In this document: positions 11,031-63,510 of the stretch, one piece after another
Layout of the letters: each line of letters starts with the position of its first letter
How positions within the stretch are numbered: the first letter of the stretch is position 1
Assembly (NCBI GenBank): GCA_023213395.1
Contig: CM041465.1
Coordinates: 182,349,741 to 182,413,740, forward strand
DNA length: 64,000 nucleotides
Direction: 5' to 3'
Source of the DNA: Cycas panzhihuaensis
Lineage: Eukaryota > Plantae > Cycadophyta
Notes under the pieces: model-generated
Seen by the model: only the letters and a program-made list of their open reading frames with translations
What the model was told of the DNA's origin: nothing
The model's database searches: none
Position numbers and translations under genes: made by a program

Positions 11031-12948
11031 GTAATTGTTACTATGCACAATATATATTAGAAAGGTGCATGACAAGGAGGATGAGAATCGACATTAAATA
11101 AGATTTTCTAAATTTTATTTGAGTGGGACACTTAACACATTTAGTGTTTAAGGAGAAGGAGGGAATAAAATATGCTCTTGATTTTTAGCCTACATCTCGA
11201 GTTTTGAGAGATAAAATCATTGTACATAGTTTGGTGAAGCTGAATAACTGCTGGTTTTCCATAGTAGAGTTTGTTTCACAGAAACTTTAAATCCAATTTT
11301 GGAAGATATAGCAAGTTTAGTTTACAACAATCTAGTTTTGATGACATAGAACTCTGTTGGCAGTGAGAAAATTAATGATGGTAAGGAGATCACATCGAGT
11401 TTCATTACTTAATTAATCACTAGTGTTTGTTTTAATATTGCTTACTACAATGTATAAAATCCAATAATTAATTATTTGTTAATTATGATTATTAGGGAAA
11501 ATTACAACCATTAGTGCATAGTTCTCAGGTACAAATGGGAAAAGTATAAATTATCATTTAGGTGAGAGCAATTTTGCACCATCTTTTATCATTAATTGAA
11601 GTTATGAGAGGGCTTCAGTTTATGGTAGTCATTTGGTAAAATATTGTGAGTTTGCCCATTCATTGTGTCGTGTTGATTGATGTTCTTGTGTGAACCAAAT
11701 GGAAAGAAAGAGGGGTAATGCATAATGAATGTGAAATCATATTATCAATTGGAAGGGGTTATTGACATGTTTATGGGGTAGGCTCATTCCCTAGTAACAT
11801 GCATCCTTTGACTAATCATTAAGAAGCCATTCTTAATCTATTAACATAAGTTGACCTTATGCCCCTAACTTTACCAATGGTGAATGTCATTAAGTAATGC
11901 ATTACCCCCTACATAATTAATAATTAATGCTCCTAGTGCATAATTACTAACACATCCTAATGACACAATACCTAATCCATCTCCATGATTCAACACATAA
12001 CAAATCATTAGCTTTCTTGCTAGTACTTTTTAACTTGCAAAAAGAAACACATTCCACATTTGATCTCATGACTCACCCAATTTGTTAAACCTTATGTTTA
12101 TATGTTAAGATAATGTACTTTATAATGTTTTATTGTTGTACTTTATTGGGTGACTTATCACTTAAGTGATAAAGTATACACCCAAATTCTTTCCTAGTGA
12201 CATAACATTGTAACTTAAGGGTCAAAGTGACCCTTACACACTTTTGCTCACAAGAGAGCCCAAATGACACTTGTCTTGCATGCAAAAGGTATAGCTTGGA
12301 TGTTTGACACTTGTCAAACATCAAGCCCTTTAGGTCTCTCCTCCAATTCTATATATTGAGACCAATTCTCATGTATTTAATATGGAGAGTGAGTAGCACT
12401 GTTATGCTACTAATTTGCTAATCAAACATTTTTTTTTATTTGGAGATTGGACCAATTCTTTCTCCTCCATATTGGTATTCTTATGCTTGTGCTTTTTATG
12501 CATATGCTTTCTTACTTTGCTTATTTCAATATTTGCTCTCTCTTAGATGCTAATCATTGTTAGAATTTTAACATGGAGAACATTCATCAACCACACAAGA
12601 TCAATATCAATGAATAGAGATCAATATAATATAATCAGAATGCATTAATATATCAAAAACATCAAAGACTCAATATGAGCCTTAATGATGTATTGTTTTT
12701 ATACACTACCTCAACCACCTTTATATACAAAAGAGGTGGGAGACTATACATCCCAAGTAATGCATGTGGGGCAAATACCTTTGTCCTAACCAATGACATT
12801 ACACCACTAACTTGACCAATAAGCTTCTATCTTTTTACATAGTATTATAATGACCCTTTGACCCTAAGACTTAGGACTATGACTAATAATCCTAGGACCC
12901 ACTTTTACTTAACCACACACGTTAAACACTGTATTCTAACACCTCCCC

Positions 12949-14450
12949 TTAATGTTTAATGTTTAAACTAAGGACAATATAACTGACATACATTAACACT
13001 TGTCTTGAATTTGAGACTATAGACACTAAAGATAACATGACACTTTGACACATGATTATCAACGGACTCCAATGCACTTTGTCTTCTTTGAATCTCCAAC
13101 GTCTTGATCTTGGAAAGGTCTTGAACACCATGTCTTGGGCTTGATCTTGGTCTTCAATCCTGTAATGTCGTTTTTGAGGTAGTCCTTTGAACTGACGATC
13201 TTCGAGTTTTGCTTCTTTCACCTTCATACACAATTGGGAATCCTTTGACATACAAAGCAAGTAGTGAATGATGGCTAATTTAGCATGATACTGCATGTAC
13301 TCATCAAAGATATGTATCACCTATTTGCTTCCACTTTCTTCAGTGCGTGAATGACCAAAAAAATAGATGTTAGCAATATCATCATTATTCAAATGTAGCA
13401 ATGAGACACCATCATCCTCCCCTGAAGCAATGAATTCATTGAGATGAGTTCCAATTGCTTCATCATTATTACCTGTAGGCTGTGTAAAATACCCAATTTT
13501 CTCCATACCACTCAAGAGATTCCATGAACCAAGTATAAAGAGTATTTCCATGATACTTACATGCATATACTTCCTGATTATGAATATGCATACATGGAAC
13601 ATTATTTTAATATGATTGATTTTTATGATCAAGTAACCTACCCAAAATGTAATATGATTTTGACAAGCAAGATTTTGATCATATGGTATCCTCCTTATGT
13701 TCCTTCATTCTTGGAAACAACTTTCCAGTGCTGTTGTAGGATATGCTGTTATAATTTTGATTCTTTCAAAGATGAGAATAGAAGATGCACCTAAGTTGAA
13801 AGAGATCATGGATAGTTTCCAATACATGCATATCACTGTATGACCTATCATTATTTGAATTCTTCCTACCAATCTGTCAACACAAACTAGGATAATATTA
13901 TCCATACCTTTTGTTAGGCAACTTGTGTCTTCATGAACTATTACCGGTAAAGTTTGATGTCCGAGTCTTCAGCCCCCAAAGCTGGTTTTTTGATGAGACT
14001 TAAGACTTTGTCATGTTGCTTTTCTCTTTTTTCTTTCCTCTTCAATTTCTTCCTTTGATTCTTTGCCCTTTTGATCCTCTGCTGCATTTCTTCAGGTCCT
14101 TTTTCATGCACTTCTGTAAGTAGTTTCTAGGTGTCCTCAGCTAAGTCGATATTCTGCAGAACCTGGATAATGAAGTGATAGGAAGAAGGAAGGTAGTCCT
14201 TATCAAGGGCTGCAAGTATTACTTCAATAACAATTCTGTTTTTCTTTTTGAAAATTTCCTCCCCTTCTTCATGAGCCATTTCGGTACCCATAACTGTTTT
14301 CCAAAGTTTCTTCAATACGAATAGGCTCTCCATCTTAATTTTCCAAAAACGAAAATTAGTTCTAATATATTTGGGTAAAGGAAAAATGAGATCTGATAAC
14401 TAATATTCATTTTTTTCAGGCACAAAGGTGATAATGTCACTTAACTCCAT
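12949..14450 (-). pseudogene. Family X ORF (Copia Gag N-terminus + degenerate RNase H-like C-terminus), copy B
   Basis: ATG at 14450. NFRFWKIKMESLFVLKKLWK is gag-like. FNLGASSI..TAYPTTALE, KINHIKIMFH and DQAQDMVFKTFPRS are colinear with Copia RNase H. A few stops and a frameshift. Confidence 0.75.
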
Positions 14451-15409
14451 GAGGAAAAGATTGACTTAAGTGCAACTACTTTGCCCATAACAGAAGTAGT
14501 TCAACAACAAATACCCTGTGATCCAATGCTGCTAACTATTTTGAAAAATAGATACCTTGGGCAATCCACACTATTTTTGTCTCAACACTAATTTTTCACA
14601 ATTTCTATGCACAAAACAAAAGTAGACATAATAGTTAGAATAAGATTCTTGCCTTCAGCAACCCATCCTTAATTGAGGAAAGGGGTCGATCATCTAAAGT
14701 GGAGGTTGTTCTTGGTGTCACCACTGTGTATTTGCAGACTCAGTGATACTGTGCTCAGCTGGCAGTGAGCAAGAAAATAGCAGTCTTCAAACAATGGTCT
14801 TCAAACAGTACTCAGACAATCTTGCCTTTATTGCCTCATGGTCTCAGCTGGATGATACCTTTGAACTGATAATTTTTCAGGACCTCCTCCAATTTGATCA
14901 CACTTTTGGGGATGATTTTTCAGTCCTCCAAAGTGGGCTTTCCTTCAAAAATAGGCTGGCGCTTGATTTTGATAGCTGTACCGATGTTTGACAAAGATAG
15001 ACTTTTGCATGGACAGGTTTGACTTCTTCACGCTTTTCTTCTCCAGTCAAAATCCGGAATAGCTTGGAGCCTCTCGCCTCTTACTATGTTTTTATCCTCG
15101 TAGCTCCATCCTATTCTTGGATTCCAGATTAATCTTTAGTGGCGACCTGTATACTTGATCTCCTGTTAAGTGCTTCCACGGCTATTGTAGACTGCAAGGT
15201 GATAATAATGGACAAACTTCACAACAAAAAAGCAAACGATATATCTGTCGAGGTCCTTGCTGCCAGTAGACCTTCAGGTGAGATTTGTTCTCCAAATTCT
15301 GAGAGGACGCTAACTAGTAGACATGATTAGCTATTACTGAGGCAAAGTGTACTTCTCATCATGACTTCAGCTGCTTCTACGATAGATATCATGCTCTATT
15401 GATCAAATT

Positions 15410-15577
15410 TGTGAACACTACCAGGCTGTTGTATCCTCGATCAACAGAAATATAATTTGTGTCTGGCACCTGACCCCCTGTCTGAAAAGGTTTCATGAGA
15501 TCATTGAATTGGCCATGGATGTCTCCACAAATAGTAATTGGACTATGAACAGGCTATTTGATTCCTTTACCACAAAG
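15410..15577 (-). pseudogene. Captured fragment of Ser/Thr protein phosphatase PP6 (FyPP-like) catalytic subunit
   Basis: Minus strand [55 protein letters not shown] versus plant PP6 [52 protein letters not shown], with small deletions. Confidence 0.9.
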
Positions 15578-17852
15578 GACCCTTCTATAAACAATTATCA
15601 GGATGTTTAGCAGGCTTTTTGGACAGAGTGTAGGCATTTTGTAGGCTGCTGTACAATCATATGCAACAGTGACAGATACTCTATGGGGCTGGAACTGAGG
15701 ACTGATTGTAATGCCCAAACAATATTCACAGCGTGAGTAGCAATCCCAGAAGATTGAGGACGTTTTTAGAGTGACGGTTTAGAGCTGAGGATCTGGGAGT
15801 TGTAGACAGTAACCAGATGGATTCACAGTGACAGTAATCAAAAGCGCTTCATAAATCTTGTATGCAGGTGAGATGCATGGATGGCAACGTTCCTTAAAGC
15901 AATAGTCAAGAGGGTTCTGAGTATGCCTGCAGGTCTTCTAATTGCTGTACTACAACCGTATAGTCCCACTGAATGGAGATTTTCAGAACTGTGATAATTG
16001 CAAAGTTCTTTCAACTGCAGACAAAGTGGATAGTCTAGTCTATGCCTTTTTAGTCTTATGTTAGAGTCCATAGGCAGCAGTAACTCAGACAATCCATATC
16101 AGATTATCACATTTATTTATGACATATCAGGCACTGATCGTTTCCATAAGATGAATTCTTCAGAAACATGAGTCTCTTTTTTTGTTCCTAAACTCAGATT
16201 GGAAGATTTCAGATTTCATCTTCAGAATTTTCAAACACTGAAATCTACTGCACACTATTTCCTTTGCAGGCAAGAGAACGGAATTACCCAGGATTTGCAT
16301 GAAACTTGGCACTGTGGGGTTTCATCCTCTTCACTCAGAAATGTAAACGAACATCGCCTCGTGAGTTAATCGCCCACTGTCTCAAAGATATAGTCCTTGG
16401 CTGGACTTCCTTCTCTCTCAGAGATCTGCCGTTGCCCAGAGGAGTTTGTTATGAGAAGACACCGATCTGCAGTGTTAGAGACCTTATATAGAAATTATGA
16501 GTCCAATTCTGTAGTGGTTAGGGTTTTGTAGATGACTGTGGCTAACTACTCAGAGACCGTTACTATGGTCTACAGGCGACCTTCTACTGAGGATAGTTAC
16601 TCCACACAAGACTGGTCAGAATTAGCCATTTGCAACCTTATCACAGATGGCAGTCTATCAATCTTCCTTCAATCCACAACAATTAGCATGCTCTTCTTTA
16701 TCTATGGCTGGCAGAGTTTTGGACACTAATTCACAATTTCAATAAGGCTGATACAGAATTGTGCTGAGAATTTTCAGAACCAATACAGGATGGGTTTGGT
16801 AACTTACTCCAAGCTTTACCAGTCACTTCTCAACAAACCAATGATGACCTAGGACTTTACCTCTCAAATCTTCAATTTGTCAGCCGCCCTAATGGAGTCA
16901 CCTTCCTTCCTTATTTGCACACAAGAGCCTTAGCAAGTGACCTGCTATGATACCATGTTAGAATTTTAACATGGAGAACATTCATCAACCACACAAGAGC
17001 AATATCAATGAATAGAGATCAATATAATATAATCAGAATGCATTATCAAAAACACTAAAGACTCAATATGAGCCTTAATGATGTGTTGTTTTTATACACT
17101 ACCTCAACCACCTTTATATACAAAAGAGGTGGGAGACTATACATCCCAAGTAATGCATGTGGGACAAATACCTTTGTCTTGACCAATGACATTACACCAC
17201 TAACTTGACCAATAAGCTTCTATCTTTTTACATAGTATTATAATGACCCTTTGACCCTAATACTTAGGACTATGACTAATAATCCTAGGACCCACTTTTA
17301 CTTAACCACACACATTAAACATTATATTCTAACAATCATCTCATTTATAAGCAGCTCTTTCTCCTCTCATAGATCCTTGGTTTAATAGGCTTAATGCCCC
17401 TTTCTAACATTTGGTATCAGTGTAGCAGAGAGGAGTTATTTCTGCCCTAATTTCCTTGTTTCTTAAAAGGGTTTTCTGTTAAGATTTTAACATGGAGAAC
17501 ATTCATCAACCATATAAGAACAATATCAATGAACAAAGATAACATAATATAATCAGAATGCATTAACATATCAAAACACCAAAGACTCAATATGAGCCTT
17601 GATGATATGTTGTCTATACACTACCTCAACCACCTTTATATACAAAAGAGGTGGGAGACTACACAACTCAAGTAATGCATGTGGGACAAATACCTTTGTC
17701 CTGACCAATGATATTACACCACTAACTTGACAAATAAGTTTCTATCTTCTCACACAACATTATAATGACCCTTTGACTTTAAGACTTAGGACAATGACTA
17801 ATAATCCTAGGACCCACTTTTATTTAACCACACACATATTAAACATTATATT

Positions 17853-19260
17853 CTAACACCTCCCCTTAATGTTTAATGTCAAGATTGCAGAAAGTGACTG
17901 AATACAAAAGACTAACATGACACTTTGATACATGACCTTCAATCGACTCAAATACACTTTGTCTTCTTTGAATCTCCAATGTCTTGATCTTGGAAAGGTC
18001 TTGAACACAATGTCTTGGACCTGATCTTGGTCTTCAATCTTGCAATGTTGTTTTTGGAGTAGCCCTTTAGAGTGACGGTTCTGGGGCCTTGTCTTCTTTA
18101 TCTTCATGTTGAATTGGAAATCCTTTGTCATGCAAAATGAGTAATGAATCATGGCAGGTCCAATTTGAGCTTGGTATAGACTTGTTAGTTGTTCTTGCAT
18201 GTGCTCATCAAAGGTATCTACAAGATGTCGATCAAATATGTCTTCTATCAGAATTCTGATCACCACCTGTTTTCTTTTACTTTCTGTAGGTTGTGCAAGA
18301 TACCCCTTTCTCTCCATATCACTCAAAAGATTCCATGAACCAAGTACAATGAGTATTTCCATGATACTTACATGTATATACTTCCTGCTTATGGATATGC
18401 ACACATGGAACACTATTTCAATATGATTGACTTTTATGATCAAGTAACCTACCTATAATGTAGTATGATCTTGACAAGTAAGGTTTTGATCATATAGTAT
18501 CCTTCTTTCTTTGAAACAACTTTCTAATGCTGCTATAGGATATGCTGTCATAATTTGGATTCTCTCAAGGATGAACATAGAGATTGAATTGAGAGATATT
18601 ATGGAAAGTCTCCAACACATGCATATCAATATCTATCCAGACATCATTTGTATCTTAATTGTAAATCTGTTGGCACACACTAGAATGATATTATCCATAC
18701 CTTTTGTTAGGCAACTTGTGTCTCCATGAACTATTACTGGTAAAGGTTGATGCCTGAAATCTTCAACCTCCAAAGCTGGTTCTTTGATGAGACTTAAGGT
18801 ATTTGATGGAGTCAAGACTTTGTCATGTTGTTTTTCCCTTTTTTCTTTCCTCTTCAATTTCTTCCTTTGATTCTTTGCCCTTTTGATCCTCCGTTGCACT
18901 TCTTCAGGTCCTTTTTCATGCACATTTGTCAGTAGTTTCCAGGCGTCCTCACGTGAGTCGATATTTTGTAGAATTTGGACAATGAAGTGATAGGGAGAAG
19001 GAAGGTTATCCTTATCAAGGGCTGCAAGTATTATGTCAATGACAATTCTATTTTTCCTTTTGAAAATTTCCTCCCCTTTTTCGTGAGCCAATTCAGTACC
19101 CATAATTGTTTTCCAAAGCTTCTTCAATATGAATAGGCTCTCCATCTTAATTTTCCAAAAACGAAAATTAGTTCCAATATATTTGGGCAAGGGAAAAGAA
19201 AGATCTGATAGCCAGTATTCATTTTTTCAGGCACAAAGACTATGACGCACTCAACTCCAT
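17853..19260 (-). pseudogene. Family X ORF, copy C
   Basis: ATG at 19260. ORFs 18633..19190 and 17853..18443 are highly similar to the B ORF. Confidence 0.75.
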
Positions 19261-20123
19261 GATGTATGAACAAAAAATATCCTCTTCAACTTGGAGAAGG
19301 TCTAACAAATCAAAAATATACTAAAACCTGAATCTAAACCTGAAAAGCTTAATTTGGTCCATGCAACCATTCTTAATATGCAATATGCAATGGACAATCT
19401 CTCTAATTCATCCATCTCTGCTACATCACCTTAGGTGTCTTTGCCAAAGCCCTTGTAACTCCACACAACAATCCTTATAAATGCGAGTATGATTAGCTGG
19501 GGCCAGCATGTAAATGCTGAAATCGTATCAACTATCTGCAGAGGGAGAACCAGATCTCTTCAAATTTCCAGAGGAGATGACATCCAACACTCTTCGAAAC
19601 TTCACGGTGAGGTGTCTTCCTTTTCTACTTTCTCTGTTGCTAGTCAACTTAGGCCCTACTGGATAAGAAGTGCAAAGCACACTGTGTAACCAGAAGTAGC
19701 TTCCAGCCCTCATCACAGTCTATGAATGTTGCTGCTAAGCCAACCATCATGATGGGCAATGCTCTCCTTCCACATTTTGTGTATACCTGTAAACACCAAC
19801 TGCCCAAAAATTGGAGTTTCGCCAAGATCGTACTTTTCCACCACCGCCAAAACTGCCAAGATCATATTTTCCAGCCAATTTATCACACTGTTGTGTTACA
19901 ACTGCTTTCTGTTTCCTTGGACTTCGCCTTATTTGTTGTTTTCAGACCCGTTCAGGTCAGAACAACCGAGCTATTATCAAGTGCTGTTAGCTGTAAAGAA
20001 ATGACCTTCTCTTGCAATAGTCTTTATCGAGAATACTTAAAGCAGTCATAGACTCATTAACAGTCAATTGTAGAAAGGACTCCTTACCAGGCCACGGAAG
20101 AAACCGTCATCAGAGTTCTTGTA

Positions 20124-20455
20124 GTTGTCATTCAGGTTGTTCTGTCGTTGTATGCTAGTGCCGAACTACAGGTATTGTTTTGGATTCTATTTCAGAAACT
20201 GAACAAGATGTAAATATGTTCTAGAAGACACTATCAACTCCAGAAAATGGTTTGGCAGGGCTAAACATAGAAACTGAGAAGAATATATGAATCAGGGCAT
20301 CTTGGTTGCTGATGGTGTTAGTCATACTGTGCTGATTTATGAAGGATATGCGCTGCCTCACACAATCTTTAGGTTGGATCTTGCTGGGCAATATTTAACA
20401 AATATTTTGATGAAGATCCTGACTGAGAGAGGGTATTCATTCACTACTACTGCTG
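20124..20455 (+). pseudogene. ACT: Captured actin fragment, split by a 119-bp insert (20189-20307)
   Basis: 20124-20188 VVIQVVLSLYAS(G)RTTGIVLDS (1-bp deletion). 20308-20455 [49 protein letters not shown]. Together these correspond to actin residues ~135-205. Confidence 0.95.
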
Positions 20456-23269
20456 TCTGAAATAGCCATTCTCATACATCATCTGCAGATGATCAACTGC
20501 AGGGAAAAGGAGCTGGCAGAGCATTCAGAGTTGCAGGTGCCACTTCAGTATTGCAGAATCACAAGGAGTGCATCACAGTTCAGGAGTATACAGATCTAAA
20601 TCTTGGGATGTACAGTGTTGTTCGTCTTTCTCAGAGAGCCCAAATACAGTTTAGACTTCAAACAGAAAATTGCATCAACGCTTTAACACAGCCATATTAG
20701 GTAGCATCGAAAAAGGGACTTATACAAGAGTGGGCACTCTGTACATCTTTCAAAGGTCACTGTTTAACAGGTCAAGGAAGTTCTGTGTATGCTTGCAAGT
20801 CTTCTAATCCGCTCTACAACCGCATCCCTCTGAATGGAGATTTTTAGAACTGTGACAATTGCAAAGTTCTTTCAACTGAAGACTTCACTTGGTTTGAACC
20901 GGAGACATAGTGGATAGGTGTTATGATTACAATCTAGGCTATGCCTCTTCAGCCCTATGTCAGAATCCACAGGTAGCAGCAACTTAGATAGTCCATGTCA
21001 GATTAGCACATTTATTTACTATTGTGGAATATCAACTATATATGACATATCAGGCACAGACCGTTTCCACAAGGTGGATGCTTCAAAAACATGATATTCA
21101 GATTTCATCTTCAGAATTTTTAAACACTGAAATCTACTGCACACTATTTTCTTCGCGGGCAAGAGAACAAAATTACCTGGGATTTGCATCAAAACTTGGC
21201 ACTATGGGGCTGCATCTTCTTCACTCAGAAATGCAACCGGACAGCAGTGCTCAGAGTCAATCAGTCCGTTGTCTCAGCATACAGTCCTTGGTTGGGCTTC
21301 CTTTTCTCTTAGAGGTCTGTCGCTACCCAGAAGAGTTCACTATGAGAAGACACCAGTCTGCAGTGTTAGAGACCTTACACAGGAATTATGAGTCCAATTT
21401 TGTAGTGGTTAGGGTTTTGTAGACGATTGTGGCTGACCACTTACAGGGCCTTACAATGGGCTACAAGTGACTTTCTTCAGAACCAGCCATGTGCAATCTT
21501 CCCACAGATGGCAGTCTATTCATCTTCCTTCAATCCACAGCAGTTAGTATATTTTTCTTTATCTATGGCTGGCAGAGTTCTGGACTCTAATTCATAACTT
21601 CAGTAAGACTGATAGAGAGGACTTTAAACTTTACCAGTCACTTCTCAACAAACCAAAATAACCAGCTAAGGGATCAATATTACCTGGCTCAAAATTCTGT
21701 TGACCCAATACTTGGCACGCTTGAATTACTGATGACTTGGGATTTTACCTCTTAAATCTTCAATCTGTCAGCTGCCCTAATGGAGTCACCTTTCTTCCTT
21801 ATCTGCACACAAGAGCTTTAGCAAGCGACCGGCTCTGATACCATGTTAAGATTTTAACATGGAGAACATTCATCAACCATACAAGAACAATATCAACAAA
21901 CAAAGATAACATAATATAATCAGAATGCATTAACATATCAAAACACCAAAGACTCAATATGAGCCTTGATGATATGTTGTCTATACACTACCTCAACCAA
22001 GGTGGGAGACTACACAACGCAAGTAATGCATTTGGGACAAATACCTTTGTCTTGACCAATGATATTACACCACTAACTTGACCAATAAGTTTCTATCTTC
22101 TCACACAATATTATAACGACCCTTTGATTCTAAGACTTAGGACAATGACTAATAATCCTAGGACCCACTTTTACTTAACCACACACACATTAAACATTAT
22201 ATTCTAACATTTTCAAACCCTTGGTGACGACCTTCACTCTTCGAAGGTGATCCAAGGTTTGTTTGAAGTACTTTCTGTAGTTTTTTAACATTCTGGAGGT
22301 ATTTGCAGGCTGAAGACTATTTATAGTGTGTTTTGATTTTTTTTTTTTTTGCCTTAACACATTTTGTTGGGTGCAACACTAATTGTTGCTTCTAACTGAA
22401 TTCTTTGTTTGAAAAAGCAATTATTTCTTATGTATTTCATCTTAGATCTGTAAATACAAAGAGGTTTTGCTCATTTTTAGGCTTGAAAGACTTACCTAGT
22501 CTCAGATCTACTAGCTGAGACCATAGTTCTGCTGATTCTAACTCACTTTGTAGCTGCTCTGTATTAAGATCCACTCCCTACAATGGAAAAATCTATTCAT
22601 TCTTGTGATTACAGGCTTTTTGGGCTGAATCTAAGTCACACAGAGCAGGCACTCAGCCTCTGCAAGCTCCTCAACTTGGTGCAGTCCTCAGCTTTGAGCA
22701 ACTTATCAAATCCGAGGGTGACTCTATAAATCTTAGTACAACTCTTCTCTTCTATTTTGCTCTCTTTTGAAGCAGTCTAGACCTTGTTGTGGATCCCACA
22801 GAGTTATTTGAGTGATTGTACATCACTCCAACAGTCAGACAACAACTATTTTCTCTCCATGGCCCATGTGCCTAGTCGGATCTTTGTTTGTTCTGTTATC
22901 TGTCTACGGTGAAGGAAATCTCACGAGAACTTAGGAGAACCTTCGTTGACGTGGTGTGGACCCTCCTTTGAAATTTCGTTTGAATCTGTGCTCTCAGCAA
23001 GCAGATCGAACGACCTGAGTCTTTGCATAGATGTGTGGGTGACAACTCGTTCATTTTCTTCAAAAATTTCGTTTGAAAACTATATTGATATAACTATAGG
23101 TTAATATCAATTGGAATACTCCTTTTTAAATAAATATTTTATTCTAAGGTGAGCTTTTATTTAAGTGATTTCAATCTATTTAATCACTTTTACATGTAAT
23201 TTTAGCCTTTTTCTTTCATTTTTGAGTTCATTTAACACTAAGCGAGAAGTTTCATCTTTTTAGTGATTT

Positions 23270-51118: not shown

Positions 51119-51928
51119 CTATTGAGCTTGTGCTATCGTCTGGTCATCCCAGTAATCTCCTATCCGAATGGTTTTTGGTTCCTCCTTACTCCCGATATTG
51201 ATTTCGGTTGTTTTTAACTTTATCATTTCAATATTTATTTTATTTCCCATGTGATGGGTAGAGGTATTTTCAATTTTTCTTTCACCATAATTGAGTTGGG
51301 TGAGTTTTGTGAGATAATTGGGGCTTTCTTCCTTTCCTTCATTGTCTGATTCTTCTTTTTTTTTCCTTCGTACTGATGATATGGCTTTTTGTTCTAGGCC
51401 TATACTTAATTTTTTAATAATCTTGAGTACCTTATCAATATTTTTGTCCTCTAATGAATGCGAAAATGTTTTTATAAAAGATTTCTTAAGGTTTTTCCAT
51501 GTTACATCTAGGTTTCGTTCTTTTCCTAAGAACCAATCTCTTGCTACATGACCTAAGGTGTGGTAGAAAAGATTGCCCCATGTTTTCCTAGGTAAACTCA
51601 AAGATGTCCATTCCTGTTTACACCTTTGGATATATTTATTGGAGCACTCTCCTACATAGAATAATGGAATGTTTAATTTTTTTGGATGGTCAAATCGTGT
51701 TCTGAATGTAGATTATAGTTTCTTCCAACCTTGAAAGGTAGTTTGGTGGGCTAGGTACCAATACCATGTGGTCCCTTGCAAGGTTAGTACCAAATCTGAT
51801 TCCCATTGAAGTTTATCCCAATTACCCTCATCTATCTAATACTCTATATAATGTATAAGGTGAGTGGTCTCGTATAGTTGGTCCCCATAAAAAGGTTTGA
51901 CATAATCTCTAATGTATGTTTCAAGGTT
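51119..51928 (-). pseudogene. Two tandem capsid (Retrotrans_gag)-like motifs directly upstream of the RT of F
   Basis: LTLQGTTWYWY..GWKKL*STFRTRF, then FYHTLGHVARDWFL..VTWKNLKKSFIKTF, running in frame into EINIGSKEEPKTIRIG. Confidence 0.6.
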
Positions 51929-52399
51929 ATATTTTAACATGGAAAGAATTCAACTCCAACATCAATATCAATGAACAAAGAAGAACTTGTATTAACTCAA
52001 CATAAGCAGATTACATTAGGATACTAATGCACCATAGACTCAACATGAGTCTCCATGATGACTTGATTACATACTCTATCTCAACCACCTATTTATACAA
52101 CATAGGTGGGAGACCATATAAAAGATGTGACACAAATACCTCTAACCTAACCAATGACACTTCACCAACCTATTAACCAATGACCTTCTAACTTCCCACA
52201 TAACATTATTACAATGCATGACCCTTAAACTCTAATACTTAGGACTATAGCTCTATTGGCTCTAAGACACACTTTACATAGAACACATATACATTAAACA
52301 TTATATTCTAACACCTCCCCTTAATGTTTAATGTTGATATTACAAGAAAACTAAGGACAACATGACACTTAGTGCTAAGGATTGACACAAACTTGACAT

Positions 52400-53890
52400 A
52401 AGACTTGACTTGAGGAGTTGTTTGAATTTCCAATGCTTGAGTCTTGGAATTTTTCTGAAGATGATGTCATAAGCTTTGTCTTCAACTGAAATGCTACAAA
52501 ATCTGTATGCTGTGTTTGTTATGTCACCTCTTGTTTCCTATTTGATGACCCTTCCTGTGTATTCCAACTTTAGGTATGGTCTCCTTTGAATGTCTCCTAG
52601 ATCAAGTATGATGACATATGTTTTCAATTCCATGAAGAGAATGGACTCCTTGTTGTTTGTCTCCAAGTCTATTAGGACAATCAACTTCTCGAGCCAATGA
52701 ACACTTCCTTGAAAGGAAAGGAGGAACAATGATTCCTTTTCTAGCTCCACGTATCCAGGGACATGTCCCAAACCAACAAGGTACTTTGTTCTCTTTATAT
52801 CATCCAAGAAATTCTTTGTGCCAAATATAATGAGAATTTCTATTATGACTAGATGCACATGTTTCTTGATTATGGTTACATAAAGATAGACCTTCACTTT
52901 GACATGATTGAATTTCATAGTTAAATGGCCTACCCAAAACATACAATGATCTTGGTGGACAAGATTTTGATCAAATGATATTCTGGCTATGTTCTTTCTT
53001 CCTTTGAATGAATCTTCTAGAGTCTTTGCAAGGTATGCTATCACAATTTGGATTCTTTCAAAGATGAGAGCAGAAGATGCAACTGAGTTGAATGTAATCA
53101 TAGAGAGTCTCATGCATGTGCAAATAACCATATGCCCTGAAATCATTTGGACCCTAGTAACAAATTTGTCAACACAAATTAAGGTAATGTTGCTCATACT
53201 TTCTACCAAGGTACCTGTGTCTCCATGGTGTACCACTTGTAAAAGTTGATCACTTTTGGATATTTAAACCTCCATTCCAAATGCAGAGTTTCCTGTCAAC
53301 TTGATGAGGCTCAAAGCATTTAGTGAAATCATGTTTTTAAATTTCAAATAGTGCTCATCTGTCTTATTTTCAGAAATGGGTTCATGCAATTCTTTATCTC
53401 CTTTATGTGTGACAAATGAATTTGTATGAGAACTGGTCTTAATAGAATCAACTTGTTTTTCCCTTCTTGCATTCTTCTTCAGCTTCTTTTTTTGATTATT
53501 TGTCTTCCTGATAGCCCCCTGCACTTCTTTAGGACCCTTTTTATACACTTCCCTCAATAAGTTCCACACCTCTTTAGCTGAGTTAGTGTTCTGAAGTGTA
53601 TGGATAAGAAAATGGTATGAAGGAGGGAGGTGATCTTTGTCGAAAGTTGCAAGTATCACATCAGTAGCTACTCTGTTCTTTCTTCTAAAATTTTCCTCCC
53701 CTTATTCATTAATCTCTGAAGTGCCATCAAGAACAATTTTCCATAACCCTTTAGCCCTAAATATATGTTACATTTTAATTGCCTAGACATGGAAATTTGT
53801 TCCCATATATTTAGGTAAAGGGAAAGGAAGATCTATTAGCCAGTATTCATAATTTTTTGGTACAAAAGCAATAATATCTTTCAACTCCAT
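52400..53890 (-). pseudogene. Family X ORF, copy D
   Basis: ATG at 53890 (MELKDIIAFVP). ORFs 53264..53659 and 52538..53236 align with the B and C ORFs. Confidence 0.75.
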
Positions 53891-54751
53891 AATGTGAGAG
53901 AGAGTTGAGTAGAAGAACATTACCCAAAGTTTAAGTGTCCATCCAACATAGCCAAGTCAAAGTCACTTACCAAGGTTTGCTTTCTTTCTTTCCTGCAAAT
54001 CAAGTATCTCTATCAAATGACTTGTCCTTCTTTGCCCTACTGTCAATCAATGAATCTCAAAATTGACACTGATATCTTTAATTCAAGGCTTCCCCTTACA
54101 TGTAGAAATATAAGTACCTTATATCACCATCAATAGAAGAGTCATATTAATCTTGAAGGAATACTCATAAAGTCTTTTGATGGAATAAGACCAAGTGGCA
54201 ATAGTCTTTACAAGGGTTAAATTGATATGTCAAATATCAATACACTAACATGCCAACGGACCCGACCAACCTTATACACTTTGATTTAATTTAATTTCAA
54301 ACATTAGTAAAATAAAGGGGCATTCATGGCCAAAACTCTAACATATTTGTGTAGGTGAGGCAGCGGCAAGGCTTCCGTTCGATTTGCAGGCGCAAATTGA
54401 TCTTGACTCTCGACGAATGACGAGGATATTCAACGGCGACACTGGCATCTGTTTTTCATCAGTGAGGATTACTTTTACTGTTGCGAGGATGATTTCTAAT
54501 CCTAGATTCAAATGGAGGTCTCTTAATATAGAATCGCACCAAAAGGGTGTGGCCCAAATGCCTTTGCCTTCGACTTTTTTGAATTCTATGGTCAAGTCTG
54601 CTTTAGTTTCTCAAAAACCCGTAGTCAAGTCTGTGGTGGATGGGATGGCACATAGACGAACAAATTTGGCATCTCCTTGTAGCCCTCTTGCTGGAAATGT
54701 AACTTGTAGTAGCAACAAGATATACATAGCCCAAAGGGAGACAAACCTAGA

Positions 54752-54828
54752 TAGCTGATGAGGTACTTTCATGTCAGGGCGAGGTCTATGTATTTGACAC
54801 AGTACCACCAGAGGAGGTACAAGCAGTG
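54752..54828 (+). pseudogene. Captured TIFY-domain fragment of a ZIM/ZML GATA transcription factor
   Basis: tag ctg atg (consistent with deaminated cag ctg acg, QLT) then LSCQGEVYVFDTVPPEEVQAV, versus ZML consensus QLTLSF(Q/E)G(Q/E)VYVF..V.PEKVQAV. Confidence 0.75.
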
Positions 54829-55941
54829 CATCACTGTCAGAAGACGATTCTCCACAGGAGCTCACAAAATGCGAGAGACCACAGATTTGACGGCTAGCTG
54901 AGCGGCTTGAATTACACACTATCACATAATGCAAACAAAGGGTTTCAATCAACACACTTGAGTGGATCTTGCGTGCAATGGCAATTCTTCATGTATCTTT
55001 GTATAGGCTTTTCTGGACCGATGTGGTTGGCTCTATGTGTTCAACACTTGCAGGTGGCTCAACCTTATCTTCATCCATGTAGTTCTCATTTGCAGCTAGT
55101 TTTCATTTCATACAGATGTAATTATGTTTGGCAGTTTCCTCCCAGAAACGAGCAATCATTCGTTGCTTCCTTCATCATTGCAGATTTCCTCAACTTGGGT
55201 TTCTTCTTATTGATAGACAGTCAATATAGGGCGGCTCCTCCATAGACTATTATCTTTCTATTCACACGGCTAAGACGGAAGCCCTATGGACAGTTGATTC
55301 TCGTTGTTCCCATCGGGATCTCTTATCATGCAATAGCTAGCGTTTCACAGATGTTTGGTAGGTTTTCATATTTGGCAAATTTGCAACAACTATTATGGAC
55401 AGGTTTTCTCTAAGGGAAAACAATTTCACCTGAAAACTAATAATTGACTCAAGTACCAACAAAGCCTCTCAATAATCATAATTGTTTCCAACACAAACCC
55501 TAAATAGGTACAGATCCTTCAGTTTTACCATAGTTTAATGGCCAACAAATTTAAAATCGTTTATGTCATCAATTCTTTTGTCTTCACACACTCATACCAA
55601 CAACTTGTCTATAAGGTAAACCCTAACAAAAGGTGAGCAGTATTTGGTAATAATATTTTGATGACCTTGGAGTCTCATCCTCTTCAAGTGTAACCAGAAA
55701 TTGGCAAACGACTCTACGGAGCCACCTCCACACCCAGGATGGCAGACCTGCACAACGATGAGCTTGACAAGCAACTCACTCTCAAACAGGTAGGAGAACC
55801 CGCTCTGTAGATGAGCAGTCAAATCTGCTGTGATACCATGTTAGATTTTAACATGAAAAGCATTCAACTCTAACATCAATATCAATGAACAAAGCATAAC
55901 TTGTATTAACTCAACATAAGTAGATTACATCAGGATACTAA

Positions 55942-58900
55942 TGTTAAACCTTATGTTTACATGTTAAGCCTATGTACTTTATTTTTCATGTAATATTTGT
56001 ACTTTTGTACTTTAGGGGTGACTTATCACTTAAGTGATAAAGTGCATACCCACATTCTTTCCTAGTGACACAACATTGTCACTAAAGGGTCAAATGGACC
56101 CCCATGCACTTTTGCTCACTTGAGAGGCCAAAAGGACACATGTCCTACATGCAAGGCATATACCTTGGATGTTTGACATTTGTCAAACATCCAATGCCTT
56201 AGGTCTCTCCTTTCACTCTATATATTGAGACCTCTTCTCATTGTTCTCATATAGAGTTGGAGCTATATTGTTATGTCTTTGCCTTGCTAATCAAACTGAT
56301 ATTCATTTGGAGATTGGACCAATTCCATCTCCTCCTATTTGGTATCATTTGCTCACTCTCTTTGTGCTTTGATCTTGCTCATGTTAATCTTATTTTCATT
56401 GTTAGTCTAGATCTCTTGCTTTCTTGAAGTAGAGAGAATCTATCTTCTAGATCTTGGGTTTCATAGGCCTTTGGCACTTTCAACATTTGGTATAAGAGCA
56501 GAAGAAGTTTGTTTCTTTCTATTCTGATTTCCTTTTTTTTGGAGATCTTGTCAAGGGTTTACAAACTCTTGGTGACGACCTTAGCTCTCCAAAGGCAATC
56601 CAAGGCTTATTGCCCCTTTGTTGCAGTAGTTCTTGGCTTTTTCAAGCCACTTGCAGGTTGGAGGATGTGCATATTTCAGATATGAAAATTTTCAGACATT
56701 TATCAAGGGTGCAACACTCAATGTTTTCCAAAAAAATAACGATTTTCTCTAATTTTTCTTCAAGAAAAATTATTTTTTTGTAGAAAAAAAAGGTAGATAT
56801 GAGTTATTTAACTGTTTTTTGGACTGTAAATTAGTCCTTTAGTTCTCATTTCTGCACAACAACTAATTTGCTATAGATTTCTAAATGTACTGAGCAGATC
56901 TGTTACCATTTCTTCAGATCTGCACCTAGTTTTTCACTGTTCTGGGCCAAATTTTTACTTGTAGGGCATATTTTCTTAACAAAAATTGTTAATTTCTTTT
57001 AAATCTAGCTAGCTAGCCACTATCTGCCACTCACCGCAGGTGTAACAAGTGTTAAAGAAGATTTTGGAGGCAATAGAAAAGGGTTTTAAACCTTTGTTGA
57101 TCCGTACAACTGCGTTTTCTCTATGTTGGTGTGTGCCCTTCAAAAAATTCAGTTGGTTCGTTCTCGCTCCATAGTGCACAGAAGTTCGTGAAAATTTAGA
57201 ATAACCTTTGTCAAGGTAAAACTAAGCTTCCCCTAAAATTTCATCTCGATTCGAGCACTATGGAGGCCGTACGAAGCAAATCTACCACCACAGCCCGTGC
57301 GCCCTTCCAATTTTTTTATTCATTTCGTTCTCACTCTGTACTTCATGAAAGCTCGTGAAATTTTAGAGGGTCCTTCATTGAGGTAATACTAAGATCTCTC
57401 TGAAATTTTGTCCAGCTCTGAGCATTCTGTAGCCCGTACAATCCACCTGAGCATTTTCAAAGTCGCACAGCTGTCCAAGTTACGTAAAAAATTTATTTTT
57501 TTTGGAAATATTTGAAATTTACAACTTTACCTTTTAAGTGATTCAATTCTTTATTTAATCACCTTTTATGTCAATTTTCAGCCTTATTTTTAATGTTTTT
57601 AAAGTCATTTAACACATGAAAAAAAAAATTTACTTGTATTTTTGACTCATTTAAAGATTTTTTAAGTCATTTTTATCATTATAAAGGCGAAAAATCACTT
57701 TTTCAAGTGTTTTATAAGGCTCCTTGCGAGGTGTCCTTTATGCCCTAGTTCTGAAATAAGGTCAAATTCATATTTTTTCGACTTTTTGAAGTCACTTAAC
57801 ACAAACAATCTTTTTAGTGACTCATTGAGTGATTGTTTTAAGTCACTTTTATCATTGCAAAAGCAAAAAAGTCGCTTAAGTGATTTTGTTAGGCTCCCTG
57901 CATGGTGTCCTAGAGTCCTAGTCTAAGCAAGGGCTCAAAAATCAAATTTTAATAAAAAGATCACTCATTTTCTTGGTGGTTTAGGACTATTTTAAAGTCC
58001 TAACAATTGGTGCATGGTGTCTACATTTTGCAAGTGACTTATTTTACCTTCAAGTTGACCATTTTCCAATAAAAGGAACCCACTTGATGCATCATCACAA
58101 GGAAGTTCATCTTATCTATTTGGGTACTTAGCACACTTTTTTGATCTTTTGAAAGGTGCTCTTTTGTATAACAATTAAGGTGTTACATGTGATGTACTTA
58201 ACTCATTTACTTAGATATCTTTTGCACTCTCTTTCACTTCATTAAGTGCTTTGTAAAACACTTTAAGTGTTACAATTTGATGTACTAAATTGCTTCTTTT
58301 TGGAGTCACATCTTGTAAGCTTTTAAGCATTCATTTTTCAAGTACATCATCCACATAAAACACACTTAAAATTCACTTAAACATTTTTTAAAAAGTGAAT
58401 TTAAAATCAAGTAGGAGAGGTCTGAAAAAGGTTCAAACCTTGCCTCTGAAATAACCTTAAGCTTGGTGCATTCCCTATGGGACCACGGACTTTATGGTCA
58501 ATGTACGACAATTAAGGTTGCTTTAGGGAAAGGAGGTTTGAAAAGGGTGTTATTGGGGCTGTGAATCCCAGGGAAAACTTGGTACATCGATGCAGATCAA
58601 CCCTATCTGCCTTGTCCTAGATTTAACTTGGCAAACTGTTGGATCTCCTCTATAGATCAGGGTTGGACCAACTCTTTAGCCTAGTCCTGCACCCCTCATT
58701 ATTCCATTCAGTTGTTGGATCTTCTAATAAGATCAGAACTGTTGCTTTCGTTAGAAGGTGGAACTTAAGCGACAAAAGTTTTGAGTTTCCAAGTTATCTG
58801 CTAGCTTCAAGCCTTACAACTTTAACATGGCTGCAATTAATATGCTAAATGCATGTACCATCAGATTAACAGGACAAGACAACTGTCAAGAATGGAAAAG

Positions 58901-61900
58901 GATTACTCAAAATCTCTTGATAATGAATGAGTTTTGGGTTTATGTTTCTGGAAGGATACCTCGATTTGTACCTGTTGAAAACGATGGTGTAATTGTTCAT
59001 CCTGATGATGCTCTTGTTGCTGCTTGGGAAGCCAAAGATGAAATTGCTTTGGCATTCTTACATATGATTATTGATGTTCATGTAGATCAGGATATTGTGT
59101 GTGCAAAAACTTCCAAGGAAGCATGGGACATTTTGTCATCCTTGTATGAAATGCGAGACGAAGCTTGCATATTGATGGTAAAAGCTAAATTGTATTCTGT
59201 AAAATTTGTCAAGCCTATGTTGGCTTTTCTTTCCTCCATCAAGGAGGTATGTAATGAATTAAATACATTAGGTAGTCATGCTTTTCGAGATGAGCTTATA
59301 ACAACAATTGTCAAAGCTTTACCTAAGGACTACAATGGTTTTATTTCTTCTACTACACGAGATGGTTCTCTCAAATGAATATTTTTCAATGAATTTGAAA
59401 GCTTGTTACTTTAGAAAGAGTAGATTTACATCAAGGACAATGATGACGAACCATCCACATTAGGGGCATTCATGGCCAAATCAAAGGCCAAGCTGAATCC
59501 AAAACCTGCACTTTCAATGCAATTTGGAAACATGAACATTGGTTCCTCAAAGACCAATGTTGTTTGTCATTATTGTGGCAAAGTTGGCCACATAGCACTT
59601 GATTGTAGGAAGAAACAAGCAGATCCTCAGCACACATGACAATAGCAACAACAACCACGTCAGCAAAATCAGAGACAACAGCAGCCACGACAACAATTCT
59701 AATAGCAGAGATTTCAGCAACAACAACAGCAGCAACCCCCTTGACCAAATCGAGGTGCCTATCAAGGAGGTCAAAGAGGAAAGGGGGGTTTTAGAGGTGG
59801 CAATCAACGCCACTTCAATTAGTTTGCAGATGAGGACAAACTGTTTTGTGCCAATCATACATCCAATGTTGATCAAACTTGGATCATTGACACTGGAGCT
59901 ACTCAACACATGACTGGGAGTGAAGAACTCCTTTACGACATCAAGGAAGGAAAATGTCAATCAATGACCTTTGGCAATAATGAATCTGTTAAGATTTCTG
60001 GCATAGGCACAATCGCTCCATTCCATTCTCCTTCCAATCCTTCCTCTACATTTCCCAATGGCAATCCCTATTTCATACCTTCCATGGAGAAGAGCTTGCT
60101 ATCTGTTAGCAAATTGGACAAGCAACATATGAGCATTTTGTTCAAAAATGGAAAATGTATAATAAGTGACAAAAATGACCAAGTAGTAGCTATTGGATAT
60201 GAGGATCATGGCCTCTACAAATTGGATGCTAATAACATAATACTTGATTCTGCTTACTCTGGTTCCATTGTCACTCAAACTTTGTCCAAGATGCAACTTT
60301 GGCATCAACGTCTAGGCCATTTGAGCTTATTAGACAATCTCAAGCAGATGATGAACAAAAACATGGTACATGGGCTTCCAAAGATGTATGGCACAAAATG
60401 TCTTTGTGAAGCATGCATAATGGGGACACAACATCGCTTGCCTTTTCCTAAAGGCAAAGGTTGGCGTGCATCATATCCTTTGTAGTTGGTACACTCAGAT
60501 TTGTGTGGACCTATGTCCACCGCATCCTTTGGAGGAGCCTTGTATTACATCTACTTCATTGACAATTTCTCCCATAAAGTTTGGGTTTACTTCATCAAGC
60601 ATAAGTCTGAAGCATTTCAAAAGTTTAAGGAATTCAAGCTTGAATTGGAGAATGAGTTTGGCCAATCCATCAAAACACTAAGGACAAACAATGGAGGTGA
60701 ATTTACTTCAAAGGAATTCACCCAATTCTGCAAAGAGAATGACATTCAGTGACAACTTACTATTCCTCACACTCCTCAATAAAATGGAGTCTCCGAAAGA
60801 ATGAATAGAACTTTGGCTAACAAAGCCAAAGCAATGATGCATGCAAAGGGACTTACTCGAGCTTACTGGGCAGAGGCATTCCACACAACTACCTAGGTGG
60901 CAAATTGAAGTCCAACAGCAGCAGTTACTGACATCACACTAGAGGAGGCATGGTCTAGCAAAAAACCAACTGTTAGCCATTTGAGGACTTTTGGGTGCAC
61001 TGCTTATATGCACATCCCCGATCAACAAAGAACTAAATTAGACAAGCATAGTCTAAAGTGCATCCTGGTAGGCTATGCCATTCATAGCAAAGCCTACAAG
61101 TTGTATGATCCCATTGGAAAGAAAATGCATCTTCCAAGAGATGTAATCTTTGCTGAAGAAGATCATAAGGAGTTGGATATAACATCCATCCAATCCCCCA
61201 TTGATAAAGGCAAAAAGATTGTTGAGGCTTTTCTTCCCTCTCAATCTTCAACTCCATGTACATCAACCACTTAGATCAGAAGATCTTGAGGTTCAAGTCA
61301 CATCAATCAAAAAATTACCCAAATGGTATACTCAAACAGTGCAGGACTACCAGATTGTTGAAGGAACATGTCCATCAAGATACAGGCAGGAAACCAATTT
61401 TGCACTTATGGCTTAAGTGCTATGTGTTGATGAGCCTTTCACTTTTGAGGAGGCTTCCAAAAATGAAAATTGGAAGGCTACCATGGATGAAGAAATCCAT
61501 TCTATTGAAAAGAATGGAACTCGGGATTTGATCGAATTGCCTAAACACAAACAGGCAATCAACTGCAAATGGGTCTACAAGACCAAATTCCATTTTGATG
61601 GTACACTTAAGCACCAGAAGGCCCGCCTTGTTGCAAAAGGCTTCAAACAAAAGGAAGGCATAGATTATGAGGAGACTTTTGCACCAATGGCTAACATGAA
61701 CACCATTAGACTCATCTTGGCCTTAGTAGCTCAATGTAAATGGTCGGTTTTTTAGATGGACGTGAAGAGCACCTTTCTCAATGGCAATCTTCAAGAGGAG
61801 GTATACTTGGAGCAACCTCCTGGTTACAAGGTACAAGGCAAGGAGCATTTAGTTTATCGCCTAAAAAAAGCATTGTATGGCTTGAAACAAGCTCCAAGAG

Positions 61901-63510
61901 CATGGTACTCAAAGATTGATGATTCCTTTTTGAGACATGGGTTTCATCGATCTACTTTAGATCCTAACTTGTACATCGAAGTTGGGAAAGACCGTGCCAT
62001 TTTCATTGTCTTGTATGTAGATGACTTAGTGATCACTGGTAATGACACTAAGATGGTACAGATACTCCAGGATGACTTGAAGAGGAGATTAAGATGACAG
62101 ATCATGGACTTCTCCATTATTTCTTAGGCTTTGAGGTATGGCAACAGCCAAGCTATATCTTCATCTCGCAAGCCAAATATTCTTGGGACATTTTGCAGCA
62201 GTTCAAGATGCACGATTGCAGACCAGCGCCTACACCCATGGAGAATGGCACAAAGCTTACTCTCAATGAGGAAGAAGAACCAACAGATCCTACACTTTAT
62301 CGGCAGTTGATTGGGAGTCTCATTTATCTCACCAACACTCGCCCTAACATCTCATTTGCAGTTGGGATTTGCTCTAGATACATGTCTCAACCCAATCACA
62401 AGCATTGGAGTGCAGCTAAATGCATACTCAAATACATCAAAGGCACATTGCAATATGACTTTGAGTATGCACATGATGAGAACTTCACTCTAGAAGGATT
62501 CTCAGATTCTGATTGGGCAAGTTGCCAGGATAGCAGGAGATCAACCTCGGGTTACTATTTTACCCTTGATTTAGCAGTTGTTTCGTGGAGTTGCAAGAAG
62601 CAACCCAATGTTACCTTGTCCTCCACCGAAGCAGAGTACAAAGCTGCAGTCAACGTAGCTTGTGAAGCTATCTGGCTATGACGGATTCTTAGGGAGCTTG
62701 GACTTGAGCAAGATCACCCCACTAGGATTTATTGCGACAATCAAAGTGTGCTCAAGTTGGCCAAGAATCTTGTCTTTCATGCAAGGACCAAACATATTGA
62801 GATTCATCATCACTTCATTAGAGAGCATATGCAAAGTGGTGAGATCAACCTTTAGTATAGACCAATAGAGCAACAGACAGTAGATATCTTTACCAAGCCA
62901 CTTGGTAGAGAAAAATTTGTAAAATTTAGAGATGGTCTAGGGGTCCGACTTAACATTATAAACAGTAAGAGGGGGTATTAAACCTTATGTTTACATGTTA
63001 AGCCTATGTGCTTTATTTTTCATGTAATATTTGTGCTTTAGGGGTGACTTATCACTTAAGTGATAAAGTGCACACCCACATTCTTTCCTAGTGACACAAC
63101 ATTGTCACTAAAGGCTCAAATGGACTCCCATGCACTTTTGCTCACTTGAGAGCCCAAAAGACACATGTCCTACATGCAAGGCATGTACCTTGGATGTCTG
63201 ACACTTGTCAAACATCCAATGCCTTAGGTCTCTCCTTTCACTCTATATATTGAGACCTCTTCTCATTGTTCTCATATAGAGTTGGAGCTGTATTGTTATG
63301 TTGCCAGTTTGCTAATCAAACTGATATTCATTTGGAGATTGGACCAATTCCATCTCTTCCCATTTGGTATCATTTGCTCACTCTCTTTGTGCTTTGATCT
63401 TGCTCATGTTAATCTTATTTTCATTGTTAGTCTAGATCTCTTGCTTTCTAGAAGTAGAGAGAATCTATCTTCTAGATCTTGGGTTTCATAGGCCTTTGGC
63501 ACTTTCAACA
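55942..63510 (+). mobile_element. Ty1/copia element E, full length, same family as A
   Basis: LTRs 55942-56485 and 62976-63510; TSD ACTAA/ACTAA. PBS TGGTATAAGAGC at 56488-56499; PPT AAGAGGGGG. Confidence 0.96.
58827..62953 (+). pseudogene. Copia E gag-pol, disrupted
   Basis: MAAINMLNAC start; WIIDTGAT protease; LWHQRLGH; HSDLCGP; KARLVAKGF; LYVDD; FSDSDWA; DIFTKPL. Confidence 0.95.

Follow-up and report, generated by a model that had tools for sequence, protein, structure and literature searches.

A 64,000-nucleotide stretch of the genome of the cycad Cycas panzhihuaensis (GenBank assembly GCA_023213395.1, contig CM041465.1, positions 182,349,741 to 182,413,740 of the forward strand; hereafter the window) carries three related long terminal repeat (LTR) elements, named B, C and D and together called family X, whose leaders contain short pieces of unrelated host genes. 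We consider it probable, at roughly 0.7, that they represent a pol-less LTR family which captured host mRNA by template switching, and whose leader acted as a permissive window for such captures. This reading is based on the structure of the elements, the identities of the cargo pieces, the loss of introns, the selection on the reading frame, the mosaic divergence of the copies and the finding that cargo is older than the insertion carrying it. The process itself, LTR-mediated capture of host mRNA, is already known from maize, rice and pepper, and family X is not a new kind of event.

Structure of the elements and their reading frame

Element boundaries and blocks were obtained by a BLAST comparison of the window with itself and by repeat finding. 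In element orientation, B and C are ordered as 5' LTR, primer-binding site (PBS), long leader, one open reading frame (ORF) region, polypurine tract (PPT) and 3' LTR. D (51925-63801) is a composite, with its 5' LTR split at 55941/55942 by a nested 7.6-kb copia; a preliminary description of this DNA had rightly placed it in the family, while treating as a single copy a span that includes the nested element. The features of the three elements are listed below.

12558-17334, minus strand: element B, a complete LTR element of 4777 bp
12558-12941, minus strand: B 3' LTR; LTR pair 97.1% identical (2.9% different)
12942-14452, minus strand: B PPT (12942-12951) and gag-like / putatively RNase H-derived ORF region; ATG at about 14450; stops and frameshifts
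14453-15904, minus strand: variable part of the B leader (the "slot"); no similarity to C or D
15905-16955, minus strand: PBS-proximal leader of B, common to C with 13-24% divergence; PBS at 16944-16955
16956-17334, minus strand: B 5' LTR, from repeat finding and self-BLAST
17477-22209, minus strand: element C, a complete LTR element of 4733 bp
17477-17858, minus strand: C 3' LTR; LTR pair 96.4% identical (3.6% different)
17859-19262, minus strand: C PPT and gag-like / putatively RNase H-derived ORF region, open at 18636-19226 and 17859-18452
19263-20770, minus strand: variable part of the C leader (slot); no similarity to B or D
20771-21843, minus strand: PBS-proximal leader of C, common to B; PBS at 21829-21843
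21844-22209, minus strand: C 5' LTR, from self-BLAST
51925-52313, minus strand: D 3' LTR, with its terminal TG mutated to GG
52314-53895, minus strand: D PPT and gag-like / putatively RNase H-derived ORF region, with open runs of 145 and 241 amino acids
53896-55844, minus strand: D leader, which cannot be aligned to that of B or C; PBS at about 55833-55844
55845-55941, minus strand: inner part of the D 5' LTR, the remainder lying at 63516-63801 past the nested copia
55942-63510, plus strand: nested copia, not a member of family X; LTRs at 55942-56485 and 62978-63510; target-site duplication ACTAA
63511-63801, minus strand: outer part of the D 5' LTR, the first 5 nucleotides being a copy of the target-site duplication of the nested copia

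The LTRs of B and C measure about 380 bp each, with termini TGTTAGAAT...(T)CTAACA of the TG...CA type. Each element is flanked by an intact 5-bp target-site duplication (TSD), ATCAT for B (12553-12557 and 17335-17339) and TTTTC for C (17472-17476 and 22210-22214), so that the chimeras were integrated as units and, since the two TSDs differ, by independent insertions. The PBS of B is TGGTATCATAGC and that of C TGGTATCAGAGCCGG; in the general form TGGTATCA(G/T/C)AGC the site adjoins the 5' LTR in all three elements. The PPT, AAGGGGAGG, adjoins the 3' LTR and has the same letters in B, C and D. The features that define an LTR retrotransposon, namely direct LTRs with TG...CA ends, a TSD, a PBS and a PPT, are all present. 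The preliminary description had reported common LTRs, a PBS matching the initiator methionine tRNA (tRNA-iMet), the PPT, the ORF and the PBS-proximal 1 kb or so for B and C, and self-BLAST and repeat finding reproduced its blocks. Once the nested copia is excluded, D proper is about 4.3 kb long, some 450 bp shorter than B and C; its LTR pair is 90.1% identical, which makes it older than these, and its TSD is not intact (TTCAA versus TCGTA).

About 40 nucleotides over the ORF end, the PPT and the start of the 3' LTR are nearly identical in the three elements (B 12922-12962, C 17840-17880, D 52294-52334, minus strand). This near-identity, despite a divergence of 25-31% in the LTRs of D, suggests a strongly constrained cis signal for plus-strand priming and the integrase end. 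The LTRs are also strongly depleted in CpG.

The ORF region is conserved at the protein level in B, C and D. It is gag-like in its N-terminal half, and in its C-terminal half we see, by eye, a resemblance to a degenerate copia RNase H. Its one Pfam signal for a copia gag, DUF4219, is faint (E 0.037). In a profile search of the gag-like half against 1.84 billion representative proteins, seven matches were obtained. Six of these (P0001-P0006) are short, anonymous reading frames from other public assemblies (Logan contigs), 40-60% identical and with the same M-E/K-L-x-D start, at E-values as low as 7e-31; P0006 joins the gag-like ORF to the RNase H-like half. Because no canonical copia gag was among these seven matches, the ORF appears to represent an old, distinct gag-like lineage. 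A homologous-protein search with the gag ORF of C gave no match, and neither did metagenome contigs, be it in a single-protein scan or in a scan for the DNA pattern of LTR ends and PBS.

The ratio of non-synonymous to synonymous substitution (dN/dS) of the gag-like half is 0.23-0.29 between B and C and 0.32 between D and C. The ORF was under purifying selection while the family diversified, and the gag-like protein therefore mattered during that time. No ORF of at least 250 amino acids is found on either strand of the window, and no pol was found; every element in the window is therefore dead. Family X is pol-less but still coding.

Host-gene pieces in the leader and their history

B and C can be aligned in three blocks: B 12558-13275 with C 17477-18155, B 13473-14452 with C 18284-19262, and B 15905-17334 with C 20771-22209. 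The stretch between the last two, B 14453-15904 and C 19263-20770 (about 1.45-1.5 kb), has no match except to itself within the window even at a word size of 7, in agreement with the earlier claim that it is unrelated in the two copies. Its edges are abrupt, with a similarity of about 75-87% falling to none within a few bases on both sides. On the ORF side the similarity among B, C and D stops no more than a few bases from CTCCAT (the ATGGAG start of the ORF as read on the opposite strand), and the PBS-side edge is known from the B/C pair alone. The leader between the PBS and the gag start codon is 1.9-2.6 kb long across the three elements, and the D leader as a whole is not alignable to those of B or C. 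There is a second non-homologous block inside the ORF region (B 13276-13472 versus C 18156-18283); it sits between the conserved motifs QPT and FDE(Y/H)MQ, and its roughly 50 amino acids in B and 22 in C are unrelated.

All 117 stop-free segments of at least 33 amino acids from the three leaders were screened with Pfam, followed by further protein searches, and the following pieces were identified.

15392-15577, minus strand: in B, PP2A-family phosphatase of PP6/FyPP type, sense to the element, with a 4-codon gap at the junction
19682-19792 (core), minus strand: in C, start of the Hira domain of HIRA, sense to the element
20124-20457, plus strand: in C, actin, antisense; piece 1 at 20124-20188 and piece 2 at 20311-20457
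54775-54828, plus strand: in D, tify domain with ZML-like QGEVYVFD..VQAV, antisense; Pfam PF06200, E 4.5e-5

The PP6, actin and ZML tify pieces had been named beforehand in these orientations and were confirmed by Pfam, PDB and protein searches; the HIRA piece of C had been overlooked. The phosphatase piece matches PDB entries at E 9e-14, is 80% identical to P0010 and has the FQTGG motif of the PP6/FyPP type. The actin piece was recognised by Pfam (4e-7) and PDB (4e-21), with 41 of 49 residues identical to actin. For HIRA, the evidence consists of a Pfam match (PF07569, E 0.0014), a match at E 1.7e-10 in a search of 5.8 billion sequences, and an identity of 76-78% with P0008 and P0009, which carry PF07569; a PDB search of this piece gave no confirmation, and neighbouring frames suggest that it may extend over about 19600-19850. 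HIRA and actin are unrelated genes that lie in C in opposite orientations, 330 nucleotides apart, a multi-gene chimera of the sort to which serial template switches would lead (PMC5131818). Recognisable coding cargo makes up about 10-35% of each slot. PDB searches with four long stop-free slot segments were empty, as was Pfam for the other segments, and the idea that the stop-free runs are unusual was set aside, their length being no more than borderline when compared with dinucleotide shuffles (p = 0.37, 0.047 and 0.057).

Two of the pieces could be read across a donor exon junction, a test that had been proposed for this family. The actin piece reads ...IQVVLSLYAS, followed by a frame slip of 1 nucleotide and RTTGIVLDS, and is contiguous over T151|G152, the presumed site of intron 2. 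A stretch of 124 bp at 20172-20295, bounded by GT...AG and located at the intron 2 site, was considered as a retained actin intron and rejected, since its first 17 nucleotides are exon 3 (GIVLDS) in frame; the actin piece is therefore spliced, and it is split by an unrelated insert. That insert, of 122 bp at 20189-20310, has no TSD, no terminal inverted repeat (TIR) and no other match in the window, and may be one more template-switch patch. As for the phosphatase, its homology in four independent genomic ORFs (P0010, P0011, P0013 and P0014) ends exactly after ...TNYIFM, and the V that follows is a GT donor site read into the intron, while the intron-less P0012 continues from ...TNYIFM with GDFVDRGYNS.... 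The piece in B passes from ...TNYIS into the next exon (VDRGYNSL...) without an intron, the 4-codon gap lying at the junction.

Because the actin and PP6 pieces cross donor intron sites intron-free, they derive from spliced mRNA, and a piece that is spliced and yet antisense excludes read-through transcription. Intron loss is read at these two junctions, one in actin and one in PP6. In P0009 a donor intron lies just upstream of ...KVYTKCG, where C has NFWAVG, candidate residues of the preceding exon. [quoted passage not shown] A nested TE as the origin of the slot was ruled out on the same grounds, no TIRs having been found either.

The divergence between copies gives a view of their history. 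At a rate of 1.3e-8 substitutions per site per year, the LTR pair divergences of 2.9% and 3.6% correspond to insertion ages of about 1.1-1.4 million years for B and C. The p-distance between B and C is 8-9% in the LTRs, 13% in the 5' part of the ORF and in the first third of the shared leader, 21% in the 3' part of the ORF and 22-24% in the rest of the shared leader; the contrast between LTRs and internal regions is significant (Fisher p=1e-7), and the synonymous divergence of 0.21-0.31 is well above that of the LTRs. Over their entire length B and C form a mosaic, and their LTRs and interiors have different histories, as recombination of co-packaged RNAs predicts (PMC13570524, PMC13317346). 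The actin piece carries 8 changes in 49 residues that are near-invariant in actins, against about 2 expected from the LTR age of C (K=0.037; Poisson p ~0.001), in addition to a stop, the frame slip and the 122-bp insert. Since this decay exceeds what could have accumulated after insertion, the capture is older than the insertion of C, and the piece appears to have passed through retrotransposition together with its element. On this evidence each lineage would hand on its own cargo, with no reloading per copy.

Explanations for the variable leader

On the reading preferred here, B, C and D, dead and diverged from one another, would belong to one pol-less family of the Ty1/copia type with elements of 4.3-4.8 kb, which appears to have retained its cis signals (LTR ends, iMet PBS and PPT) and a single 3'-side ORF, gag-like in one half and RNase H-derived in its tail. 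Its reverse transcriptase (RT) and integrase would have been supplied in trans by some autonomous element. Inside the virus-like particle, RT may have switched onto co-packaged spliced host mRNAs and then back, and such switches would have replaced stretches of the leader by short patches, that is, PP6 in B, HIRA and actin in C, and ZML/tify in D. For patches that are antisense yet spliced, the switch onto mRNA could have occurred during plus-strand synthesis, or a piece of cDNA could have been ligated in. The chimeric elements would have kept retrotransposing, so that each lineage inherits its own cargo. The leader would be a permissive window and not a dedicated loading site; cargo would be located there because no other long stretch could be overwritten and leave both the cis signals and the selected ORF whole.

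A number of points weigh against this proposal. The family is sampled by three copies, all from one window, and the evidence base for repeated capture is these three old lineages. The template-switch step, whose hallmark is microsimilarity at the junctions between donor and element, is deduced from its products. About 65-90% of each slot is without an identified origin. PP6, actin and tify are each found some 860-1200 nucleotides upstream of the gag ATG, although the sequence in between is non-homologous; this shared distance, noted after the fact, is regarded as a coincidence whose chance is roughly a few percent, and a permissive window does not predict it. We assume, from plant actins in general and not from the host gene, that intron 2 lies at T151|G152 in all plant actin genes. 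The assignment to Ty1/copia rests on the iMet-type PBS, the 5-bp TSD and the by-eye resemblance to RNase H. A 5-bp TSD and an iMet-type PBS are typical of copia, not exclusive to it, and the match to tRNA-iMet is itself presumed from the canonical copia PBS and not from a host tRNA.

The preliminary description had gone further, proposing a dedicated, length-constrained slot at a fixed position that is repeatedly loaded with host transcripts, and that could form an archive of mRNA fragments, a source of small interfering RNAs (siRNAs) against housekeeping genes or a camouflage from silencing. Three copies do carry three different cargo sets, both slot edges are abrupt between B and C, these two elements are nearly equal in length, and PP6, actin and tify lie at the similar distance from the gag ATG given above. 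Derivation from spliced mRNA is borne out; the repetition claimed for it is sampled by three old lineages, and the fixed position is not supported. One of the edges is the start of the selected ORF, and since this edge is the ATG of an ORF under purifying selection it can be explained by survivorship, while the other edge comes from a single pair of copies. The near-equal length holds for B and C and breaks down for D, with which a constraint on cargo length fails, and the D leader is wholly unalignable. Furthermore, B and C also differ in the second block and in divergence throughout, and the actin cargo, being older than the insertion of C, indicates slow turnover. The archive, siRNA and camouflage ideas are already published models, and those of camouflage and siRNA cross-talk are weakly supported in maize (10.1101/777037). 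A dedicated slot is accordingly judged unlikely.

It is more doubtful still that the gene pieces were captured at the DNA level by integrated copies, as cDNA or filler DNA joined during double-strand-break repair, and are copy-specific scars. The end-joining of stray cDNA would easily explain the antisense spliced actin and tify pieces and the 122-bp insert, and the patches are very short. However, the amino-acid changes in actin are about four times the expectation from the LTRs of C, and B differs from C by the replacement of a whole 1.45-1.5 kb, not by small additions to a common leader. That there was no capture at all, the three leaders being one ancestral sequence diverged past recognition and their likeness to genes being due to chance, has next to no probability. 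For B versus C it is refuted by the loss of all similarity, from about 75-87%, over a few bases at either edge, and the cargo matches are far past chance (actin 4e-21, phosphatase 9e-14, HIRA 1.7e-10). For the non-genic leader of D compared with B or C the case is different: plain divergence could account for it, the gene piece apart, because the LTRs of D are 25-31% diverged and the leader of B and C evolves about as fast as synonymous sites. The suggestion that D has a third version of the region therefore holds as regards its own tify piece, while the remaining difference may be divergence alone.

Relation to known systems and to the surrounding elements

Template switching onto co-packaged mRNA is an established model, in which partial, intron-less and sometimes multi-gene chimeras arise that are then non-autonomous (PMC5131818). 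In the LTR-mediated retroposition described by Tan et al. (2016, PMC5131818), as in family X, intron-less partial mRNA copies replace internal sequence and two-gene chimeras occur; secondary retroposition of the chimera is also included, with which the decay of actin in C is in line. Unlike the cases described there, the events in family X are old and not polymorphic, and two of its four pieces are antisense, an orientation not given by a simple minus-strand switch. The gene-transducing retroelement Bs1 of maize (Jin & Bennetzen 1994; Elrouby & Bureau 2001, 2010) is, as far as the accounts in PMC13317346 and PMC5131818 go, also a small pol-less, non-autonomous LTR element that holds incomplete exonic parts of several host genes unrelated to each other, and both of its characteristics, host gene sequence between LTRs and intron loss, were found in family X. 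In family X, by contrast, cargo varies between lineages; its pieces are shorter and decayed, occur in either orientation and lie upstream of a retained gag-like ORF, with no new hybrid ORF.

Retroduplication by LTR retrotransposons has been described in pepper and other angiosperms (Kim et al. 2017, PMC5664825) and in surveys of rice and sorghum (PMC3726574), and maize Sireviruses show captures without orientation bias, 15% of the gene-carrying Sireviruses holding at least two fragments (10.1101/777037). In all of these cases, as in family X, spliced host transcripts lie inside mostly non-autonomous LTR elements. Those surveys mostly report longer or whole-gene copies in elements without gag, whereas family X holds scraps of 50-330 nucleotides beside a selected gag-like ORF. 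The TR-GAG elements are non-autonomous LTR elements of under 4 kb with gag as sole ORF (Chaparro et al. 2015, PMC4350172); family X may resemble them in having one conserved ORF with a gag-like half under purifying selection, the gag identity being weak (DUF4219, E 0.037), and differs in its length of 4777, 4733 and about 4300 bp, which exceeds 4 kb, in the putative RNase H-derived tail, and in the 3'-sided position of a gag barely recognised by Pfam behind a leader of 1.9-2.6 kb. Modular, recombining non-autonomous LTR families are known from sugar beet (PMC13570524), and template-switch chimeras from Veju/BARE-2 (PMC13317346); LTRs and internal modules are reshuffled between lineages in these systems too, which the B/C mosaic fits, but their modules are element-derived and part of the material exchanged in family X is host mRNA.

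The likeness to Pack-MULE and Pack-CACTA elements, which are also non-autonomous mosaics of host gene fragments, is only an analogy. Both are TIR-bearing DNA transposons whose captures take place at the level of DNA and often include introns, and Pack-TIR elements have TSDs of 8-10 bp; in family X the LTRs are direct, the TSDs measure 5 bp, a PBS and a PPT are present, and the cargo is intron-less.

Family X offers a clean and dissectable case of spliced-mRNA pickup by plant LTR elements, with two spliced junctions and two genes joined in opposite orientations, and its cargo adjoins a gag-like gene that was kept under selection while pol was lost. A far-reaching extension would be a genome-wide class of gag-only copia-type elements with a leader hot spot at a nearly constant distance upstream of gag, overwritten many independent times by spliced mRNA scraps in both orientations, with dozens of cargo sets and siRNA cross-talk with the donors. 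We hold this to be improbable. If true, many independent cargo sets at the same place would provide a natural system for the rate and the junction rules of RT template switching, and the family could serve, with housekeeping genes like those for actin and PP6, as a test of the published model of camouflage and siRNA cross-talk.

The window as a whole is a wholly decayed landscape of nested TEs, and an Rfam scan of it returned no family (0 matches). When B and C are removed in silico, their flanks join up as part of an older copia on the plus strand (12083...28723), namely its 5' LTR and leader, where the two were inserted 142 bp apart and in the same orientation. This neighbouring copia was considered as a helper of family X and is not supported in that role, the two having in common only the TGTTA...AACA termini and a generic iMet-like PBS. 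The copia nested in D is of the same family as the one hosting B and C; two families are accordingly mutually nested within 64 kb, B and C inside one copia and a related copia inside D.

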